Shown piece after piece: positions 6-37,364 of a stretch of 64,000 bases of DNA (the stretch's first letter is position 1; every line of letters starts with the position of its first letter). The translations under genes and the position numbers were made by a program. The stretch covers positions 1 through 64,000 of the IMG/VR virus record IMGVR_UViG_3300044797_000098; one strand, given 5' to 3'. The notes beneath the pieces were generated by a model. The model made no database searches and was not told the origin of the DNA. It saw only the letters and a program-made list of their open reading frames with translations.

Positions 6-1190
6 TTACCCCGACATAAATGTTCGGGGCTTGTTGCTCGTCCTGCGTTTAGCAGGATGTTGTTTTTGAACGGCAACAATAGGCTCATTGACAAGAGCCC
101 AAGATAGAACGGTTGTTATACCGTTCAAAAGATTGATTGCGGATACTGCACGGTTTTTGATATTGATTGAGGCATTGACGTCTGCGTTTGTGGCGAAGCC
201 ACATTGCAGGCAAAGAAAATCGCTCTGCGATTTTCGATTACCCTTTTCACAATGTCCGCAGTTGCTACACGTTCTGCTTGTATTACGAGGATCAACGAGT
301 GCTACTGGAACACCTGCTATCTGCGCCTTGTAAAGTATGAACTGCATCAGTTGATTGAATGCCCACTTACCGTGCTTGTCTCTATCCTTTTTTCTAACCG
401 TTTTCTTGAAAGATTGCAAATCTTCGATTGCAATTCCAACATTGTGCCTTTTCGCTTCCGAGACAACCCGTTTGCTTATGATATGATTCGTGTTTCTCTT
501 GAATTTTCCTTCCTTGTTAGATATTCGTTTGAGATGACGTTTTGCGGACTTCGTTCCGCGAGACTGTAATCGTTTGCGTAAATTATGATATCGTTGTCTG
601 ACTGTTTCTACTTCGTTGCCTACGAACTTGACACCGTTGTCCAGCGTGGCTAAATTGACAATACCAGAATCCATACCGATAAAATCGGTTGGCAGATATT
701 GTTCTGCTTCTGGAACTTCGACTACGGCTTGTAGAAAAAAATTACCATTATTGAAAACTAATGTAGCACCGTTTCTAATCTTTCTATTGTATAAGTTTGC
801 ATATGTTCCGAAAGCGATTGGTATCTTTTTCAATCTTCTATTGATAGAAGATATGGAAATCATATCAAGGTTCTTGCCGAAGGCAAGAACCCTTGCATCA
901 AAATCGATTGATGAGTGTTTTTGGAAACGATGTTGAACGGTCTTGTCGTTTTTATATGTTGCTGAAACGCGTGCTATTGCACGGATTACAAATTGAGATG
1001 GTAGAGATGGAAACTGTTTGCGAACTTGATGATAGATTGCCTTTTGCAGTTTGAATTTAGAAAAACAACGATTAGCAAAAGCATATTCCGAGATCGAATT
1101 ACAAGTAGAATTGAACACATACATCGTGTTCAATAACGATTGTTTTTCGTTTGCAGAAACTATTAGTTTGACTGGAACGGTTAGCAACAT
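6..1190 (-). CDS. tnpB: TnpB RNA-guided nuclease (IS200/IS605-type), copy 1
   Basis: 394 aa; RuvC motifs GMDSG, IEDL, NADVNA; CxxC-CxxC zinc finger (CSNCG...CLQCG); right-end hairpin overlaps the 3' end of the gene. Confidence 0.93.
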   Translation of the reverse strand: MLLTVPVKLIVSANEKQSLLNTMYVFNSTCNSISEYAFANRCFSKFKLQKAIYHQVRKQFPSLPSQFVIRAIARVSATYKNDKTVQHRFQKHSSIDFDARVLAFGKNLDMISISSINRRLKKIPIAFGTYANLYNRKIRNGATLVFNNGNFFLQAVVEVPEAEQYLPTDFIGMDSGIVNLATLDNGVKFVGNEVETVRQRYHNLRKRLQSRGTKSAKRHLKRISNKEGKFKRNTNHIISKRVVSEAKRHNVGIAIEDLQSFKKTVRKKDRDKHGKWAFNQLMQFILYKAQIAGVPVALVDPRNTSRTCSNCGHCEKGNRKSQSDFLCLQCGFATNADVNASINIKNRAVSAINLLNGITTVLSWALVNEPIVAVQKQHPAKRRTSNKPRTFMSG

Positions 1191-2599: not shown

Positions 2600-3844
2600 C
2601 GCAGGGATACCCTTGGCTTCAGTCAAGGGATGAACTGCGCTCCGTGAATTATTTTTGTGTTGCATACGATTTTTCTCAACTTTCTACTACTAATGATATA
2701 TATACTTACGATGCGAAGAACTTTTTCTTTCTATATGCTTGCTCCAAACGGATTTTTAGACTATCTAAAAACTTGTTCGGATATTTTTACTCGTCATGTG
2801 GAATGGGCATTTTCTAATAAATCTACTAATAAGGTTCAAGCACACAAAGACTTGTATCAAGTTATTCGTTCCGAATATCCAAACATACCTTCCAACATTT
2901 TACAAGCAACACGAGATCAAGCATTGGAAGCAGTTAGAAGATTGAAGTTCAAAATCAAACCTAAAAAGAAACCACATTCAGCGGTTAGATACGATGCCAG
3001 AACAATTACTCTTCGCGGTAATCTTTTGACTTTTTCGTGGTCAGGCAAACGAATTAGAACACTAATCAATTTACCACAACATTTTCAACAATACAAAAAT
3101 TGGAAGATGCAATCAGGAACTATTGGTTATGACAAGGTCAAAAAGCAACTAAAAATTAGCCTTATTTTTGAGGCACCAGATACGATACCTATTCAAAACT
3201 CAACAAGAATAGTAGGCGTAGATCGCGGATTATATAATATCGTCTCGTTGTCAGACGGTCAATTGTATAATGCGCGAACGGTAAGAAAAAAGAAACGCGA
3301 GTTTCTTTATACGAAACGACAACTCCAAGCAAAAGGCACTCGATCTGCTAAACGAAAACTAAAAGCAAGATCAGGTCGAGAAAAGCGGTTCAGCACGGAT
3401 ACCAATCATGTAATTAGTAAATGGTTAGTAAATCAGTCATATGATACATTCGTTTTTGAAGACTTGAAAAACATTAGCAAGCAACGCAAAGGCAAGGTAT
3501 TGAATGGATGGCTTTCTAACTGGACATTTTTTCAATTAGAACAATTCGTTTTGTATAAAGCATCAACATTAGGCAAACAGGTTGTCAAGGTAGATGCAAG
3601 ATATACAAGTCAAAAATGCTCTAATTGTGGAATTGTTGAAAAATCTAATCGCAATAAATCAAGATATTGTTGCAGTAAATGCGGATATATAGAACACGCT
3701 GATATCAATGCTGCAAAAAATATCAAGATGAATTATACTCTCTCGTTAGCAGTAATGAATAACGAGCAGGCACCAGTCAATGTGCCATATGTGTCGATAG
3801 CAATATTAGATACAAGCCCTTGCCTTTAGGCAAGGGTACTTGAC
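2600..3844 (+). mobile_element. Non-autonomous IS200/IS605-like element carrying tnpB only
   Basis: Left hairpin CGCAGGGATACCCTTGG...CAAGGGATGAACTGCG at 2600-2639; right end CCCTTGCC-TTTA-GGCAAGGG-TACTTGAC ending at 3844. Confidence 0.75.
2711..3829 (+). CDS. tnpB: TnpB RNA-guided nuclease, copy 2 (start reassigned to MRRTFSF at 2711)
   Basis: RuvC motifs GVDRG, FEDL, HADINA; zinc finger CSNCG...CSKCG; N-terminus parallels copy 3 (MQRTISI). Confidence 0.93.
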   Translation: MRRTFSFYMLAPNGFLDYLKTCSDIFTRHVEWAFSNKSTNKVQAHKDLYQVIRSEYPNIPSNILQATRDQALEAVRRLKFKIKPKKKPHSAVRYDARTITLRGNLLTFSWSGKRIRTLINLPQHFQQYKNWKMQSGTIGYDKVKKQLKISLIFEAPDTIPIQNSTRIVGVDRGLYNIVSLSDGQLYNARTVRKKKREFLYTKRQLQAKGTRSAKRKLKARSGREKRFSTDTNHVISKWLVNQSYDTFVFEDLKNISKQRKGKVLNGWLSNWTFFQLEQFVLYKASTLGKQVVKVDARYTSQKCSNCGIVEKSNRNKSRYCCSKCGYIEHADINAAKNIKMNYTLSLAVMNNEQAPVNVPYVSIAILDTSPCL

Positions 3845-3846
3845 AA

Positions 3847-4980
3847 TCATCGAGCAAAAGGCTTGCACACGCGAGCCTTTATGTCCTGAAAACGAAGCCT
3901 AATGCTTTTGCGTTGAAGCGTTGCAACCGACAATGGCTTCTTATCATTCGAGCACAACAAGAGATCAACCTCTTCTTTGTCTTTATACCATTTCGTTGGA
4001 GGAGCAAGGAACTTATCCATTAGCGCATCGAACACTTCTCGGAAGGCGCCCGAAGCAAAAAACGCTACAATCAACAGAACCACTGCGATACATATAATCA
4101 TGGTCATAAGACCAACCATGATTACTGCAACTCTATGGTTCAAAACCATCATAACTATCAGTGTAAAAACGATTGGCATGAACGGAAGCAAGCATATCTT
4201 GCGAAGGACATACCAAGCAATCTCACCAGCAGAATACTCCTTAATGTGGTCTTTGTCTTCTGGCAACTTACGAATGAAGAATGTTCCCTCATCATATGTC
4301 AGTCTAACACTATCGCCAAGATCATATCCTGAAAATGGATTCAGGTATTCGAACTTGAAACCTCTCCAACCAAAAGCCAATGCACTAACACCGCACATAA
4401 CAAACCGAACAATGAAGCTCAACAAAACCATTGGAACTTGGATGGTATAAGCAAACAATCTACGCTTACGGAAGTCGCATTGATCAACTGCCTTATTGCT
4501 GAACATCCAATTCACATACGTCTTTTCCAACTCGGAAGGTTCCTTTGCGAAACATTCCTTTGGAATGTCAAGAGATAGAACTGGTGCTGCATTCGGTGGA
4601 GTATTCGTTTCCGACATTGATGATGGAATAGACCACTCATTGTTATCGACAACCGTAGTTTCGTATATACCGTTGTGGGTTGTTAGATATGTTGTCCTTG
4701 CTGACTTTCGATCTTGCGCAGAAACGAATGCAAAAACGTTATTCTTTCCGGGCTTCTTGAACGTGATGTATGTCATTAGTTCCGTAAGTGGAACAACATA
4801 TCGCGTTTCGTATAATGTATATTGCCCGCCAATATTTTCTGCTGCGACAACAATCACAACTTGCGGATCAACAACACCATTATCAGTGAGCGTTTTGATC
4901 AGGTCTTTATCTACGCACCAACTGATTGCAATGCTACCAGTTGATATATCTGCGTTAGGGTCAATATGAAGTTCAAACAT
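3847..4980 (-). CDS. Membrane protein of unknown function
   Basis: 377 aa with several hydrophobic helices in the C-terminal half. Confidence 0.75.
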   Translation of the reverse strand: MFELHIDPNADISTGSIAISWCVDKDLIKTLTDNGVVDPQVVIVVAAENIGGQYTLYETRYVVPLTELMTYITFKKPGKNNVFAFVSAQDRKSARTTYLTTHNGIYETTVVDNNEWSIPSSMSETNTPPNAAPVLSLDIPKECFAKEPSELEKTYVNWMFSNKAVDQCDFRKRRLFAYTIQVPMVLLSFIVRFVMCGVSALAFGWRGFKFEYLNPFSGYDLGDSVRLTYDEGTFFIRKLPEDKDHIKEYSAGEIAWYVLRKICLLPFMPIVFTLIVMMVLNHRVAVIMVGLMTMIICIAVVLLIVAFFASGAFREVFDALMDKFLAPPTKWYKDKEEVDLLLCSNDKKPLSVATLQRKSIRLRFQDIKARVCKPFAR

Positions 4981-4986
4981 TGGTAT

Positions 4987-5541
4987 CTACTTTCTGACAG
5001 ACAACGACAAGTCTGCGCTCATCATATACTGAACGTTGATGGCGGATGCTGGAATGCAAGTGCTCAGATCAACCGTGATCGTAGCAACGCCAGCAGCCAA
5101 TATATCCACGAGTGTGGCGTTGTCAAGGAGGATCGGAAGAGGAATAACTCCATTGATTGGAGTAAAATCCGTTTCCGATAGGAGTTGTTCTGGTTGATTG
5201 TCATTGTTGATGAAGATGCGTGCATGCTTGAACGACGACAGATCACCCGACAAGTTATTGCCAATGAAGGAAACAGTAAGCGTTCCTTGCTTCTTCAACT
5301 GCGTTAGAGGATCATGAATATCAATCGTTGTGCTTTGCGTTGTGGTGAAAACCGGCGCATCGGTAGTCCCACAGATAGGAGGACTATAACCACCAAGTGA
5401 TGGTGCAACGAATGACATATCCTCATTGACATTGATAGTGTCGGAAAGAGTTCCAGAGACACACGCACACACGCATGTGCATGCGAGAATAGATAGGAGA
5501 GTTGAAGCCTTCATTGTTCGTTGTCCTTTCAAAACAGCCAA
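4987..5541 (-). CDS. Putative secreted protein or lipoprotein
   Basis: Signal-like N-terminus ending CTCVCAC. Confidence 0.65.
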   Translation of the reverse strand: MAVLKGQRTMKASTLLSILACTCVCACVSGTLSDTINVNEDMSFVAPSLGGYSPPICGTTDAPVFTTTQSTTIDIHDPLTQLKKQGTLTVSFIGNNLSGDLSSFKHARIFINNDNQPEQLLSETDFTPINGVIPLPILLDNATLVDILAAGVATITVDLSTCIPASAINVQYMMSADLSLSVRK

Positions 5542-11773: not shown

Positions 11774-12079
11774 TTATACATCAAACTCCAACAAACAAGC
11801 CAATGCACCAGTCGTCAATCGTTCCATCATCGGAACGGTCGGACGGGAATGAACTTCTTCCAATAGACTATGATCGACAAGCAGATCAAATCCATTGATC
11901 TTCTTCACGAGATCGAATGGAGTATGATCATCCAACGAGATCTCGTCTTCAATCAACTCATCATCATTGACATCGATGAACGGATCGCTTTCGATCTTCG
12001 CAACTGCCTTGAACTCTTGCGTTCGCTTTGCAGGACGAGGGGGTGTTTTTACTGATAGCAACGTTGTCATCTTAACCAT
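11774..12079 (-). CDS. Small acidic protein directly downstream of the terminal CRISPR repeat (likely start MVKMTT)
   Basis: GGAG Shine-Dalgarno precedes the ATG at 12079; D/E-rich middle. Confidence 0.6.
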   Translation of the reverse strand: MVKMTTLLSVKTPPRPAKRTQEFKAVAKIESDPFIDVNDDELIEDEISLDDHTPFDLVKKINGFDLLVDHSLLEEVHSRPTVPMMERLTTGALACLLEFDV

Positions 12080-12129
12080 TTCTCCATTTCGTCTCAATCT
12101 TTAGGGTGTTGAGCAACCGTTATACCTAC

Positions 12130-12158
12130 AATATACTCACACTATACAATTTTGTCAA
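12130..12158 (-). promoter_or_regulatory. Sigma70-like promoter inside the array, upstream of the last repeat
   Basis: TTGACA (12153-12158)-17 nt-TATATT (12130-12135). Confidence 0.7.
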
Positions 12159-12164
12159 GACTCA

Positions 12165-12225
12165 CGTCATATAAACTTATGAGCCTGAGTTTCGATCTTA
12201 TAGGGCGTCGAACAACCATTACTAC
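12165..12225 (-). ncRNA. crRNA-like regulatory RNA (variant repeat plus a guide against the cas12 promoter)
   Basis: Variant repeat keeps its stem through compensatory changes; the first 11 guide nt TCAGGCTCATA equal 14465-14475, next to a TTG PAM. Confidence 0.8.
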
Positions 12226-12484
12226 TCCTCTCAATCTTTAGGGTGTTGAGCAACCATTACTACATGATGGCATTCATCTTTTAGTTGATGGAGGATTGTC
12301 AGTCTCAATCTTTAGGGTGTTGAGCAACCATTACTACCTGATAGTTCTCACTGCATCGGAGCCGGATAATGCCGTCTCAATCTTTAGGGTGTTGAGCAAC
12401 CATTACTACCAACTTGATAACAAACGTATCTATGGAAAAGAACGATTAGTCTCAATCTTTAGGGTGTTGAGCAACCATTACTAC

Positions 12485-12605
12485 CAGTGTCGAAAATTAC
12501 TTCGTGATTTCAACCACTTACGATAGCGTTTTCGAGCACCTCTTCCTGACCCGTCTCTTGGCAACTATACTAACCCAAGAGACGGGTTTGTCAAGTGGCA
12601 CCTAA
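12485..12605 (-). promoter_or_regulatory. CRISPR leader with promoter and inverted repeats
   Basis: TTGACA-16 nt-TAGTAT (12567-12594); perfect 13-bp inverted repeat 12549-12561/12575-12587; 7-bp inverted repeat TCGAAAA/TTTTCGA at 12490-12535. Confidence 0.65.
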
Positions 12606-14402
12606 CTATGCGACTTCCATAAGGGTTTCCTCATTGCGAGCACCCTCGGGGGTTTTGGCGTCGCCTGACCGCTCGCGCTCAAGTCCGCGGTCAAGGATAT
12701 TGTTTGATGCATTCTCATCTCGATCATGTTCAACACCACAACCTTGACAAAAATACTTCAACATACCTTTGATATCATCATTGTAATAATGACATATTCC
12801 GCATTCTTTTGAAGTGCCACGAGCATCAACTTCGATATATCCTTCTGTCTTTCCTCTGCTACGCAATGCGTTCTTACACGCATTACGAAACTCACTTGGT
12901 GCAGTCAGTTGCCTATTAGTGCTTCCAGCATTACCTCGTGCAAGGTTAGACAGATTGATGTCCTCGAAAACAATCGAACCGTATTGATCAGCAAGTTTTG
13001 CTGCCAACTTACGATACTCTTCGTTTCGATATCCAACTCCGCGATTGCGTTGCGAAGAAGCCCACTGCCATAGATGGTGATCATGATATCTCCATCCCGC
13101 AATACCAGTTCCTTTTGTTAGTGTTTTCGTTTCTTTATTCCACGAACCACTAATACCATAAATCTCTTCATCTCCCGCAAAACGATTGGTTGACCATTGT
13201 TTCACCAATCTTGCAAGACGACCTTGCGATCTCCACTTATCCAAGTGTTCACATTCTTTCGTGAGCCATTCGGGCAAGTTTTCTTTTCCAGTCATCCATT
13301 CAACTAATGATTTACGAACAGCATCGAACTCCTTATCTCGAATGCTTTCGATTTCGTTAGCCTTTGATAGTGCTGCAATGACACTTGATGGGACACGAAT
13401 ATCCCATTCCTTATTATCAGTTCCTTTACCATATCCAATGCGAACCGATCCGTCTTGCATATCGCGCCAACCAAGATCAATACCAACGCACGATTGATTG
13501 TTGTGTGCAATTGTATTTTGATTGTCATTGAACGTAATAGACACCGTCCAATGTTCTCGTGCTCCAATCTTATTGCAACATACCTGTACAACCTGAATAA
13601 CGCTTCCAGTAGGAATATCACGATGATATACCATTGGAAACTCTGCCCAGATAGGCTTACGATCATTGTCGGTTCCAATACGGAGACGGAACAATCGCAA
13701 GTCTTTCTTACCAACCTTACGCATCGTTCCATCTACCTTTACAATTGGAGCAGGCATAGGAATGATCCGAACCATCTTGCTTGATGCTTCAATGCCAATG
13801 ACCTTATCAATAGGTTCATTGGGTTGAAACTGCTGAATACCAACACGACCTTCACCAAGATATGAACGGAAACGAGGATCATTCGGTTCAACACCATCAT
13901 ACAATGGCATCTTACGAGTTTTCTGAAACGCATCCTCAATCAACATATACGTTCCATACCACGGAGCAATATCACTCTTGCGAACCTCTGCAATCTTTAG
14001 GTTCGCTTGCTGATCAATAGCAGTTCGTTTTGCTTTGATATCCTCATTGCTACGAAGCAATCTGCGTGCTTCAATAAGTTTCGAGTTGATTTCTTTGCGA
14101 GCCTTCTTTGCATCCCTCAGTTCTTGCTTCATCTCATCGGTTGCAACGCGAGTGCGAGCATCCGCATTAGCTCGTTTGTTCCTCTTGTCGAACGCAATAA
14201 CCTTATCATCCGCTTCCTTTACTGCGACTTCCAGTTCAGGAATATCACCTGCTTGTCGTTCAATGGTTCGGATTTCATTTCTCCTCCATCGTTCAATCTC
14301 AATAAGTTTGTTTTGGTAATTGTGTCCCTTTCTAATCTGCTCCATAACAAGATCATGGTTCAGTGTGGGTGCCAGAAGTCCTAACTTGAAGGTGCGTGTC
14401 AT
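12606..14402 (-). CDS. cas12m: Compact type V CRISPR effector, Cas12m-like (subtype V-M / V-U1)
   Basis: 598 aa next to the array; long coiled-coil REC insertion, WYGTY and GEGRVGIQ segments, RuvC-I GIDLGWR, KWRSQGRL, RuvC-II VFEDINL, TAPSEFR, zinc finger, RuvC-III DRDENA; collinear with the Cas12m proteins as I recall them. Confidence 0.8.
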   Translation of the reverse strand: MTRTFKLGLLAPTLNHDLVMEQIRKGHNYQNKLIEIERWRRNEIRTIERQAGDIPELEVAVKEADDKVIAFDKRNKRANADARTRVATDEMKQELRDAKKARKEINSKLIEARRLLRSNEDIKAKRTAIDQQANLKIAEVRKSDIAPWYGTYMLIEDAFQKTRKMPLYDGVEPNDPRFRSYLGEGRVGIQQFQPNEPIDKVIGIEASSKMVRIIPMPAPIVKVDGTMRKVGKKDLRLFRLRIGTDNDRKPIWAEFPMVYHRDIPTGSVIQVVQVCCNKIGAREHWTVSITFNDNQNTIAHNNQSCVGIDLGWRDMQDGSVRIGYGKGTDNKEWDIRVPSSVIAALSKANEIESIRDKEFDAVRKSLVEWMTGKENLPEWLTKECEHLDKWRSQGRLARLVKQWSTNRFAGDEEIYGISGSWNKETKTLTKGTGIAGWRYHDHHLWQWASSQRNRGVGYRNEEYRKLAAKLADQYGSIVFEDINLSNLARGNAGSTNRQLTAPSEFRNACKNALRSRGKTEGYIEVDARGTSKECGICHYYNDDIKGMLKYFCQGCGVEHDRDENASNNILDRGLERERSGDAKTPEGARNEETLMEVA

Positions 14403-14449
14403 TGGAGTTTTCTTTCGTAGTTGAGTGTTGTTGTCTCTTGCATACCACC

Positions 14450-14478
14450 AATATAATCACGCCCTATGAGCCTGACAA
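14450..14478 (-). promoter_or_regulatory. Sigma70-like promoter of the cas12 gene, overlapped by the regulatory target
   Basis: TTGTCA (14473-14478)-17 nt-TATATT (14450-14455). Confidence 0.75.
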
Positions 14479-14999
14479 GGGGTCGCATCAAAAAAAACTG
14501 ATTGTGGTAGCAGGTAGGAGATCATCGCACATCATCATGCCCCCATCCTTACTTGCGCGCAGACTTCACAAAAGAGAACCGTTGCGACTTGACCACTAAC
14601 ATTAGTGGTATCGAGATCAATACAAGACAGATCAATGAATGAGTTTGAGATATCGTTTCCACAATGTTTGCAGTTCATAACTATATCCTTTGTTTGTTTT
14701 TGATTTTCCCGCCCTTGTGCCAGAATGAACGGACACAATCGTCGAGCACAACCGCAGTTTTATAGGCGTTCAAGTGAATATGAATGAACGTCTTGATTGC
14801 AGTGATTATTGCGCTGAACATTTTGTGGGATTGATTGGTTGATGTTTTACGAACAACCTATCCGTGTTAGGATCGTAGAACGCCATCGCAATACCAGATA
14901 CAAGATTGCTATTGAGCATTTGATCTAATACCGCTTTCGCTTGCTTATCACCAGCGAGAATTAGGGCGTAGAGAGTGTTTTCTGAAAGACGCATTTGAA

Positions 15000-23063: not shown

Positions 23064-24368
23064 TTGATTTGTCTTTCAGTATGAGAGGTTTAATCGCCCC
23101 ATGTATCGCGACGTGGGGGCTGAGGTTTATCACCAGCAAGATAGTATCCAATTATTGCGAATATCCCGAAGAAAAAGCCAAGCACTGCTGCAAGTAATGG
23201 GTTGCGTTTTTCGATGTTAGCAATGTGCCAGCAGGCACATGTGCAAAAGACGGTGTATAGTAATCCGAATACATGATATAGGTTCATTTGAAACTCCTAC
23301 ATCAATGCAGGAATGTGCATTCAATCAACGAATACCACTTCCACGCCAATCTCGGCGAAGAAGTCAATCAAGTCTCTCTCACGAATCGCTTCTGATAGAT
23401 TCTGATTGTCATTGATATCCATCAGGTTCATACAAGTCTCGCTAAGAGTCGAACAACCTTCATACTCGAAGAATAGTCCTTCTGCTTCGGAAGCAAAACG
23501 AGCCCATTCTTCTCGATGGGATGCATCATATCCAATCGGAATATCCTCGGGAGAGGCAACATCCTTAATCCGCTCAGGTTCAAGACCGCATGCAAGTCCG
23601 AAAAACCCAAGACAACACATCTTGTTGTCAGCGGATCGTAATAGATAGGACTCGTTCCATCCTTCGCCCCGCAACCACTTACTGCGTTCAATAACGAGGT
23701 TCATTGTCTTTGTCCTTTCATCCATCCGAGTGAAAATCTTCACGGTAATAATGTCCACTATCTTCCAGTGCTTCGAACGGCTCATTGCAGTTCGGGCAAT
23801 CATCGGGGTAATCATATTCGAGATCAATCTCTTCGTAATTGAGACCTTCGGAACTGGTATTCAACACACTGACTTCAACTTCGTGATCGCATTCGATGCA
23901 CGTGAGAGTGATTGTTTTCATTGTGATATCCTATGCTGCAATGTCATCTTGTTGATGCGGTTGAGTTTCCATCCAATTCCTGATGTAGTCAAGACGGACA
24001 GTCCATTCGTGTCGAATGCGGTCAAGGTTCCATTTGACGAAGGCTGTGATGTAGATATCAGGACAGCCTTCGGGATTGTTCATCGGACGTCAATCCCATT
24101 CAATAGATTGGTTTCATACCAAGCAATCAATAGACACCCGTATATTAGATTGAATGACACGATGAAAGTGAGAATTGATTGAAGAATCATTTGAGTTGTT
24201 CCTTTCAAGAGTTTGCTCTCTATGTCTCCTAACTCTCAAGGCGAGTTAGTTATCCCTCCAAGACCAGCATAGAGAGCCAGTTTAGTTTTGCATTTTCCTA
24301 ATGCTTTGATTTGCCCCGACCTTACACCCGTGTGTTTGAATGCACGGATGTAAGAGCAGAGAGATCAA

Positions 24369-36155: not shown

Positions 36156-37364
36156 ATGCAACGAACGATCTCTATCAAAATTGACGCACCAGCAGAGTTT
36201 TTAGATTACCTAAAAGCTTGCAACGAGCTATACAGCAGGTATGTTGAATGGTGTTTCGAGACCAAGAGCTACAATAAGAATAAATCTCATACCGAGCTAT
36301 ATGAAAAGTTTCGTCAGGAGTTTCCAAGTATCAATTCTGCCACCATTCAGTGTATTAGAGATAATGCACTTGAAAGCGTCAAGGCATTGAAATTCAAATT
36401 CAAGCCGAAAAAGAAGCCACATTCTCATATTCGTTTTGATAAGAGAACGATCGCTCTTCGAGGTGATCAACTATCGTTTGCATGGTCAGGTGATCGTATC
36501 AAACAGATCATAAAGATACCAGAGTTTTTCAAAAAACGATATGGATCTTGGAAGTTTCAGGCAGCAACAATAGGCTATAATAAGCATAAGAAGCAATTCG
36601 TTGCTAATCTGATTTTTCAATCAACTGCTCCGCAGGAGCTTCGCTCTTCTGCTCCGCAGGAGCTTCGCTCTTCTGCTCCGCAGGAGCTTCGCTCTTCTTC
36701 ACCTGAAAAGAAAGGTGATCGTGTAGTTGGTATCGATCGTGGACTGTATAACATAGTGTCTCTATCTGATGGTTTCAAGTATGCTTCCAATCAGGTCAGA
36801 AAAGTGAAACGAGAAGTCTTGTTTCTCAAAAAGCAACTTCAAACAAAAGGCACCCATAGTGCTAAACGCAAATTGAAAGCGTTGTCTTGCTATGAGAAGC
36901 GGTTTAGTTTGAATGTCAATCATATCATCAGTAAATTGTTAGTTTCGTTGCCATACGATATTTTTGTTCTCGAAGACTTGAAAGGTATTCGTAAGCAAAA
37001 ATCAAAAGGCAAACGACTAAACAAGTGGCTTGCTAACTGGTCATTTTGGCAATTAGAGGCTCTTCTGGGATATAAGGCAGAGATATTTTGCAAGCAAATT
37101 GTCAAAGTCGATGCTCGATATACCAGTCAAAAGTGCTGCAATTGCGGTCAAGTAGAAAAAGCCAATCGTGATGGCTCACATTACCACTGTGAGCGTTGTG
37201 GATTTAGGTGTCATTCGGATACGAATGCTGCTAAAAATATCCGCAATAACTATCTCATCTCTGCTGCTGAAAAACAGAAGGCAGAGCAGGCTATGTGTCA
37301 ATTAGCCGAATGCTTCGTATCGAAAGATACAGAAACAAGCCCCGTTGCTTTTAGCACGGGGTAA
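36156..37364 (+). CDS. tnpB: TnpB RNA-guided nuclease, copy 3, with a 3x APQELRSS insertion
   Basis: GIDRG, LEDL, HSDTNA RuvC motifs and zinc finger; right end CAAGCCCCGTTGCTTTTAGCACGGGGTAATTGA. Confidence 0.93.
   Translation: MQRTISIKIDAPAEFLDYLKACNELYSRYVEWCFETKSYNKNKSHTELYEKFRQEFPSINSATIQCIRDNALESVKALKFKFKPKKKPHSHIRFDKRTIALRGDQLSFAWSGDRIKQIIKIPEFFKKRYGSWKFQAATIGYNKHKKQFVANLIFQSTAPQELRSSAPQELRSSAPQELRSSSPEKKGDRVVGIDRGLYNIVSLSDGFKYASNQVRKVKREVLFLKKQLQTKGTHSAKRKLKALSCYEKRFSLNVNHIISKLLVSLPYDIFVLEDLKGIRKQKSKGKRLNKWLANWSFWQLEALLGYKAEIFCKQIVKVDARYTSQKCCNCGQVEKANRDGSHYHCERCGFRCHSDTNAAKNIRNNYLISAAEKQKAEQAMCQLAECFVSKDTETSPVAFSTG
36625..36696. repeat. Three tandem copies of the 24-nt hairpin element
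   Basis: (CTGCTCCGCAGGAGCTTCGCTCTT)x3. Confidence 0.95.

Follow-up and report, generated by a model that had tools for sequence, protein, structure and literature searches.

The first 64,000 nucleotides (nt) of a 406,470-bp viral contig of IMG/VR (IMGVR_UViG_3300044797_000098), analysed as a whole and hereafter called the window, contain a giant-phage CRISPR-Cas locus whose features all lie on the minus strand: a gene for the effector Cas12m (12606-14402), a short immune array (12228-12484) and, at the tail of this array, a variant repeat (R5, 12189-12225) that has a guide of its own. This last unit probably encodes an RNA of the CreR type, that is, a CRISPR RNA (crRNA)-like RNA (crlRNA), by which Cas12m represses its own promoter (P_cas). 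What can be read from the DNA is (i) a handle in R5 both of whose helices are kept, (ii) a guide that matches the non-template strand of P_cas directly 3' of a TTG trinucleotide, and (iii) a predicted array promoter (P_array) so placed that it could drive the four immune repeats, R1 to R4, and then R5. The negative feedback proposed in a first-pass annotation of the same stretch thus finds support at the level of sequence, in the form of a Cas12m effector, an intact handle, a target on the -35 box and spacer of P_cas that is flanked by a putative protospacer adjacent motif (PAM), and the preservation of this site in a relative (L001).

The variant unit and its putative target at the cas12m promoter

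R5, which is the pseudo-repeat of the regulatory unit, lies a mere 2 nt (GA) after R4. Its alignment with the repeat consensus bears out the five substitutions and one insertion (C>T, A>G, A>G, inserted T, T>C and G>A) that had been noted in the first-pass annotation, together with the two compensatory pairs by which CTCAA/TTGAG has become TTCGA/TCGAA, and shows that the fifth substitution likewise keeps pairing by turning a U-A pair of the other helix into U-G. All eight handle pairs therefore survive, and the 5' 13 nt of the repeat are unchanged. The pairs in question come from an alignment of 14 repeat units in nine loci of the clade, where two interleaved helices (eight pairs) have 97.3% of their cells paired and compensatory changes in five of the eight pairs, leaving shuffles and slid registers far behind, and where these helices match the stem and pseudoknot described for Cas12m2 (PMC10442227). 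Minimum-free-energy folding of single units, a method that cannot predict a pseudoknot, was uninformative (z-scores near zero). R5 is, as expected of a CreR or crlRNA, a repeat-like unit that is distinct from the immune repeats and has retained its handle pairing. At three of its five substituted positions it has the clade consensus, the array repeats of the window and a further repeat downstream (R6) sharing the other state, and it therefore looks like an older unit that has escaped homogenisation with the array rather than like one in fresh decay; three of its 'changes' may be older states that were kept, not new mutations.

The guide opens a 59-nt pseudo-spacer (12130-12188), of which the first 11 nt correspond to the seed, while the remainder is unmatched and holds another predicted promoter (P_R6). 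This 11-mer, TCAGGCTCATA (12188-12178), has one other exact copy in the window, at 14475-14465, directly after TTG (14478-14476), and the match between guide and target starts at guide position +1, ends at position 11 and breaks at position 12. The copy lies in P_cas, the predicted cas12m promoter (14450-14478), which consists of a -35 box TTGTCA (14478-14473), a 17-nt spacer and a -10 box TATATT (14455-14450), agrees with the consensus at 10 of 12 positions, and is the second-best promoter-like site of the region (the three best are P_R6, P_cas and P_array). The shared 11-mer, the preceding TTG, the break after 11 nt and the position on the -35 box and spacer of this very promoter had all been claimed beforehand, and were recovered base for base. 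The predicted operator (14465-14482) is made up of CCCC, TTG as the PAM and the 11-nt seed, the seed taking up 3 nt at the end of the -35 box and 8 nt at the start of the promoter spacer, and the TTG being itself the first half of the -35 hexamer. Such PAM-proximal partial complementarity to a cognate cas promoter (11 of 11 nt from guide +1, none beyond) is what characterises CreR and crlRNAs. Compared with the PAMs of other orthologs, the target flank, CTTG, fits every one published for Cas12m, namely TTN for MmCas12m2 (PMC10442227), which the first-pass annotation had taken as established for Cas12m, and YTN, YTTS or TTV for others (10.64898/2026.03.26.714355).

A second copy exists for 7.9% of the 11-mers of the window and a TTN-flanked copy for 0.7%, and the chance drops to ~2e-5 per guide, by arithmetic from these empirical rates, when the copy must also fall within ~150 nt upstream of cas12m. 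There is a single site with one mismatch (at 23422), and its flank is CCA, not TTN. The two contexts of the 11-mer are not collinear, since it lies 19 nt upstream of the -35 box of P_R6 in the pseudo-spacer and overlaps the -35 box by 3 nt, reaching 8 nt into the spacer, in P_cas; the pair is therefore not the product of a promoter duplication.

The circuit that we propose would operate as follows. P_array, together with read-through from P_cas, would transcribe the array and the R5 unit as one, the R5 handle would be bound by Cas12m, and the loaded effector would recognise TTG and pair over 11 bp, forming a short R-loop, confined to the seed, across the -35 box and spacer that would exclude RNA polymerase and lower transcription of cas12m. 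MmCas12m2 passes through a 12-bp intermediate R-loop before reaching the full 17 bp (PMC10442227), and because the predicted pairing stops at 11 bp, near this intermediate and short of 17, binding would be weaker and reversible, and the feedback graded. The seed of MmCas12m that is intolerant of mismatches is reported to be the first 11 nt, a length equal to that of the pairing in the window, which we count as support for autorepression, and synthetic Cas12m operators placed between -35 and -10 have given up to 167-fold repression, the TTG of the -35 box having been noted as a possible PAM (10.64898/2026.10.26.761838). The R5 RNA, which would stem from the same transcript as the three immune crRNAs, would be their competitor for Cas12m; the circuit would then follow the amount of free Cas12m, as has been demonstrated for CreR, and feedback would be relieved when the immune crRNAs take up the protein. 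CreR autorepression by partial pairing next to the -35 box, with crRNA competition, has been shown for Cas12a, and the wider premise of the first-pass annotation, that crRNA-like RNAs repress cas promoters, rests on experiments in types I-B, I-E and V-A (10.1101/2023.03.10.532045).

Relatives of the locus and rival explanations

For comparison, ~30 loci were fetched; a scan of metagenomes added only three short ones and a profile scan of GTDB genomes no relatives. The contigs of five close relatives (L001, L140, L144, L146 and L148) end at the first repeat, with their array tails outside the comparison. L001 encodes a Cas12m that is 57% identical to that of the window, amid neighbouring genes that differ. 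The sole long identical run between its promoter and P_cas is a block of 18 nt, made of the CCCC, the TTG and the 11 nt of the predicted operator, which ends at guide position 11 and on either side of which the sequences have diverged. The spacer of a sigma-70 promoter needs no specific sequence for polymerase, and eight bases of the block are within this spacer. A block that ends where guide pairing ends and has eight of its bases in the spacer is as predicted for an operator of the R5 RNA. Scans of IMG/VR for the operator returned nothing but the window's own contig with a 17-mer and, among the matches listed, nothing but chance matches with a 15-mer.

Within the close clade, 3 of ~14 non-canonical units (R5 of the window and units of L002 and L143) but 0 of ~44 ordinary spacers had a PAM-proximal, TTN-flanked cis match 9 nt long or longer, and all three cis matches of the clade are TTN-flanked. 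In L143 (51% identical, alignment A1), a solo variant repeat upstream of the cas operon has a guide that matches 9 nt with a TTC flank; three promoters in tandem precede this operon, and the match directly abuts the -35 box of the last one. In L002, the guide of the terminal unit has a 12-nt match that is TTA-flanked, lies on the other strand and comes just ahead of the following gene.

Several points weigh against autorepression. The contig of L001 ends in the first repeat, and its regulatory guide would lie beyond the contig end. In the search of homologous loci for covariation between guide and promoter, which had been suggested at the outset, the TTG and 11-nt site were found to be kept in L001, none of the relatives compared has guide and operator changed together, and L143 offers a different pair, whose 9-nt match is shorter than the 11-nt seed. 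The match in L002 is simply a hairpin as well. No guide/promoter pair was found in L003, L141, L142 and L145, and the proposed circuit would therefore be sporadic rather than a general feature of the clade, as is CreR among V-A loci. Robust binding uses 17 bp in both Cas12m2 and PmCas12m, and 11 bp may be too few for repression; our promoters, moreover, are consensus matches only. No protospacer was found for any spacer, and a PAM could thus not be derived for this ortholog: the three spacers of the window (S1 to S3) matched nothing in IMG/VR other than the array itself, the arrays of the window, L143 and L003 had no protospacer in GenBank phages, and 168 spacers cross-matched against all fetched loci returned shared arrays and self-targets of L121 only. 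Finally, pre-crRNA is cut by PmCas12m at two places, one after repeat nucleotide 2-3 and the other at guide position 17-18, and if the enzyme of the window made the latter cut as well, Cas12m bound to R4 would cut inside R5.

Three other explanations have to be weighed. R5 could be a decaying terminal repeat whose 11-nt identity to P_cas arose by chance or is a relic of recombination, with no regulatory role. This has the merit that degeneration is common among terminal repeats (a changed last base is found in R4 and likewise in the final units of L003 and L141), that 7.9% of the 11-mers of the window recur somewhere and that several relatives are devoid of any guide/promoter pair. However, every change in R5 keeps base pairing, the match starts at guide +1, is TTN-flanked and falls on the cas12m promoter (chance ~2e-5), the site is conserved as an island in L001, and the contexts of the two copies, not being collinear, speak against a duplicated promoter as their source. 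We thus regard this explanation as improbable. Hardly better are the prospects of a second one, in which the R5 RNA is mainly an inter-phage weapon, i.e. a 'Cracr' anti-CRISPR crlRNA that shuts the cas12m promoter of a co-infecting relative or of a host copy, self-repression being a side effect. Phage crlRNAs that turn host Cas proteins on their own genes have been reported (10.1101/2024.10.29.618823), an identical PAM and seed site exists in the cas12m promoter of another element (L001), and the cassette is mobile, being absent from a related phage and having different neighbours in L001; yet the target and the cognate cas12m belong to one and the same cassette, in cis and at a distance of 2.3 kb, the unit is predicted to be co-transcribed with the phage's own array, and the R5 handle is no nearer to the L001 repeat than are the window's own repeats. 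Still less likely is a third one, which takes the 18-nt block for the operator of a protein or for a core element of the promoter, gives R5 to R6 some other use, e.g. in RNA processing ahead of the operon downstream, and treats the shared 11-mer as incidental. The block does include a -35 hexamer that is conserved anyway, and R6 and handles like it are found immediately ahead of genes, or of an RNA gene, in several loci; but eight conserved bases are in the promoter spacer, where no specific sequence is needed, conservation stops precisely where guide complementarity ends, and no regulator gene was detected adjoining the cas12m locus.

Two of the fetched loci have peculiarities of their own. 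In L143 (3396-4083 and 6113-7104), an open reading frame (ORF) upstream of cas12m has a duplicated Cas12m N-terminal segment after Asn/Asp-rich repeats, and the repeats of the array fall into two subtypes, GGC..GCC and GGT..ACC, which show covariation in helix 1. In L121, which encodes a distant viral Cas12m (30% identity), two full-length spacers (5161-5347) match their own contig at 2097-2169, ~870 nt upstream of cas12m, where the self-targets overlap on opposite strands and are flanked by TGC and AGG.

Effector, array and insertion site of the cassette

Judged by homology, the 598-aa ORF is Cas12m and the locus is a CRISPR-Cas system of type V-M. The best PDB matches of this ORF are all Cas12m (23vw, E=1e-47, and Cas12m2 8hhl, 1e-21, with the single sequence), a profile of 19 relatives has Cas12m as its best match (E=8e-84), and the C-terminus is a TNB zinc-ribbon domain (PF07282). 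As is typical of V-M, this effector in homology, size and TNB domain goes with ~36-nt repeats that have a stem and pseudoknot handle, no sign of a trans-activating crRNA (tracrRNA), in that no anti-repeat was found on either strand of the 64-kb window, and no adaptation genes, the ORFs flanking cas12m having no Cas domains of cas1, cas2 or cas4. Since the effector matches Cas12m structures and the 406-kb contig is classified as viral in IMG/VR, the description of the system as phage-borne type V-M holds good. Megablast of the locus against GenBank phages gave no match. The residues at RuvC positions, D309, E480 and D562, are invariant across the 19 relatives, and this D-E-D triad differs from the H-D-D of Cas12m2 (PMC10442227); to judge from it, DNA cleavage by the Cas12m of the window may be possible. 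The PAM-reading residues of Cas12m2 could be mapped in part (W152 has its counterpart in W148 and there is a Gln-rich strand, while Y141 and N156 are not conserved) and were not used as evidence.

Seventeen further IMG/VR viral contigs (L120-L136) encode Cas12m-like proteins with adjoining arrays. Virus-borne Cas12m is therefore not rare, contrary to the claim of a 2026 preprint to the first phage Cas12m. Cas12m is a descendant of TnpB, and three TnpB-like ORFs are found within the same 64 kb, at 6-1190 (minus strand), 2657-3829 (plus strand) and 36156-37364 (plus strand), all matching phrog_506 'transposase' (E=1e-41 to 1e-47). The window also has a tRNA-Lys gene (anticodon TTT) at 1488-1562 on the minus strand.

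The immune array consists of four 36-nt repeats, R1 (12449-12484), R2 (12374-12409), R3 (12302-12337) and R4 (12228-12263), separated by spacers S1, S2 and S3 of 39, 36 and 38 nt. R4 is of terminal type, with G instead of C as its last base, and since the terminal repeats of L003 and L141 have their last base altered too, the immune array ends at R4. The gap of only 2 nt between R4 and R5 has a parallel in L142, where two handles are in direct tandem with no spacer and no other array; Cas12m bound to one unit of such a tandem may exclude or cut the other. P_array (12567-12594) reads TTGACA-16-TAGTAT and has its -10 box in the loop of a perfect 13-nt inverted repeat (12549-12561 / 12575-12587), similar to one around the -10 box of L003. 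This inverted repeat could serve as a read-through terminator, as a hairpin in the processing of the cas12m transcript or as an operator for a protein. In the leader that separates cas12m from the array, a short motif, GCTCGAAAA / GCTCGCAA, lies at 12528-12539 (minus strand); it recurs in the leaders of six relatives (L001, L003, L137, L140, L144 and L145) and also near the 3' end of the cas12m coding sequence.

R6 (12091-12129) is identical to the consensus handle over 28 nt at its 3' end and divergent in its 5' part. It closes the R5 mini-array and starts a single base beyond the -10 box of P_R6 (12130-12158; TTGACA-17-TATATT, 11/12 consensus, the best promoter-like match of the region). Neither this sixth repeat nor a promoter inside the 59-nt pseudo-spacer was part of the first-pass annotation, which also had nothing on the pairing kept by the fifth substitution of R5 or on the three positions where R5 has the clade consensus. 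Next comes ORF98 (11774-12070), an acidic 98-aa conserved phage gene with homologs of 72-76% identity, which is not a cas gene; the 23 nt that directly follow R6, i.e. the 'guide' position, contain its ribosome-binding site and start codon. In related phages (L150-L152), the flanking genes are kept and the cas12m cassette is missing, synteny breaking between 14735 and 12064 of the window (versus 5648-6004 of L150), from which it follows that the cassette is an insertion within a conserved operon of small genes. R6 would bound the mini-array, and P_R6 plausibly restores expression of ORF98 and of the genes after it, which the inserted cassette would have cut from their operon. Because a near-consensus promoter immediately precedes R6, ORF98's primary transcript would have its start at roughly the 5' end of a mature crRNA; its mRNA would begin with a Cas12m handle and have its start region in the guide channel, and a Cas12m cut at guide position 17-18, if made as in PmCas12m, would sever the ribosome-binding site from the start codon.

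R6 belongs with a pattern seen elsewhere in the clade. L141 has two near-identical 52-nt modules (one mismatch; 3900-3951 and 5274-5325), each made of 12 nt, a stem-changed variant repeat and AATA and each sitting before a gene, one after the array and the other 1.3 kb away between two clpP genes; no cis target was found for the guide of either module. In L142 and L145, start codons lie 8-11 nt after the last repeat. Upstream of cas12m in L146 (3470-4000), a promoter is followed by a truncated handle, this by a 31-nt spacer and the spacer by a full repeat, which lies 12 nt before a complete bacterial-type RNase P RNA (RF00010, 289 bits, 3631-3977), with two tRNA genes nearby. It is conceivable, though we would put it no higher than a tentative suggestion, that the repeats of the clade double as 5' handles on non-CRISPR transcripts, through which Cas12m would process, cap or silence phage RNAs.

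Comparison with known systems

The unit described above has much in common with the CreR of type V-A (Moraxella bovoculi Cas12a; CreR is also known in I-B and I-E; Liu et al., 10.1101/2023.03.10.532045). Both have a repeat-like handle and a pseudo-spacer with PAM-proximal pairing, both belong to a single-effector type V system, and in both the target, with a flank that in the window is a putative PAM, is at or next to the -35 box of the effector promoter, with crRNA competition that is demonstrated in V-A and would be expected in the window. They differ in that the system of the window (i) is of type V-M, whose effector is already a non-cleaving repressor in characterised orthologs, (ii) is virus-encoded, (iii) has its unit at the array tail, 2 nt after the terminal repeat, and not upstream of cas, and (iv) would use the TTG of the -35 box itself as the PAM. 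A survey of standalone repeat-like elements and mini-arrays by Shmakov et al. (10.1101/2023.03.03.530964) describes the same signature, a repeat-like sequence beside the cas locus with a spacer that partly matches a site there, and has V-M only in its discussion of partial complementarity.

Regulation of this kind is not restricted to type V. The complementarity of tracr-L, a tracrRNA isoform, to its target is ~11 nt. The tracr-L of the Streptococcus pyogenes II-A Cas9 system, a natural single guide by which the Cas9 operon is autorepressed (Workman et al. 2021), pairs shortly and partially with a cas promoter, where it mediates binding without cleavage and negative feedback, as we propose for R5, whereas the effector, the RNA (a long tracrRNA isoform versus a crRNA-like unit) and the PAM are different. 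Cracr crlRNAs (10.1101/2024.10.29.618823), like R5, are virus-encoded crRNA-like RNAs that direct a Cas effector to a cas promoter, but their viruses have no cognate cas genes and target the promoter of the host, whereas effector, RNA and target are found in one viral cassette in the window. Assignment of R5 to this class of viral solitary repeats (virus without effector, host promoter targeted) was ruled out on these grounds. CreTA (CRISPR-repressed toxin-antitoxin), in which a small toxin gene next to the crRNA-like RNA is repressed by it, was likewise rejected, since the guide matches P_cas only and the neighbouring ORF98, a conserved phage gene, occurs in phages that do not have the cassette as well.

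Cas12m is a natural 'dCas', under development as a compact repressor and epigenome editor. If the circuit is real, it would reveal how Cas12m is natively tuned, with seed-only binding as a graded and reversible operator, and would extend crRNA-like autoregulation to a subtype where avoidance of cleavage may not explain partial pairing. It would also be the first case found in which a virus controls its own CRISPR effector by such a route, and would constitute a ready-made design for self-limiting Cas12m expression cassettes. The synthetic Cas12m NOT gates (10.64898/2026.10.26.761838), whose authors note that the first 11 nt are decisive, are engineered full matches of 17 nt, in contrast to the 11 nt of the natural site. 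The literature searched holds no instance in which Cas12m or type V-M is linked to CreR or crlRNA regulation. In conclusion, the locus is probably a case of autorepression that is CreR/crlRNA in kind and, within this literature, new both for type V-M and for a virus-encoded effector.

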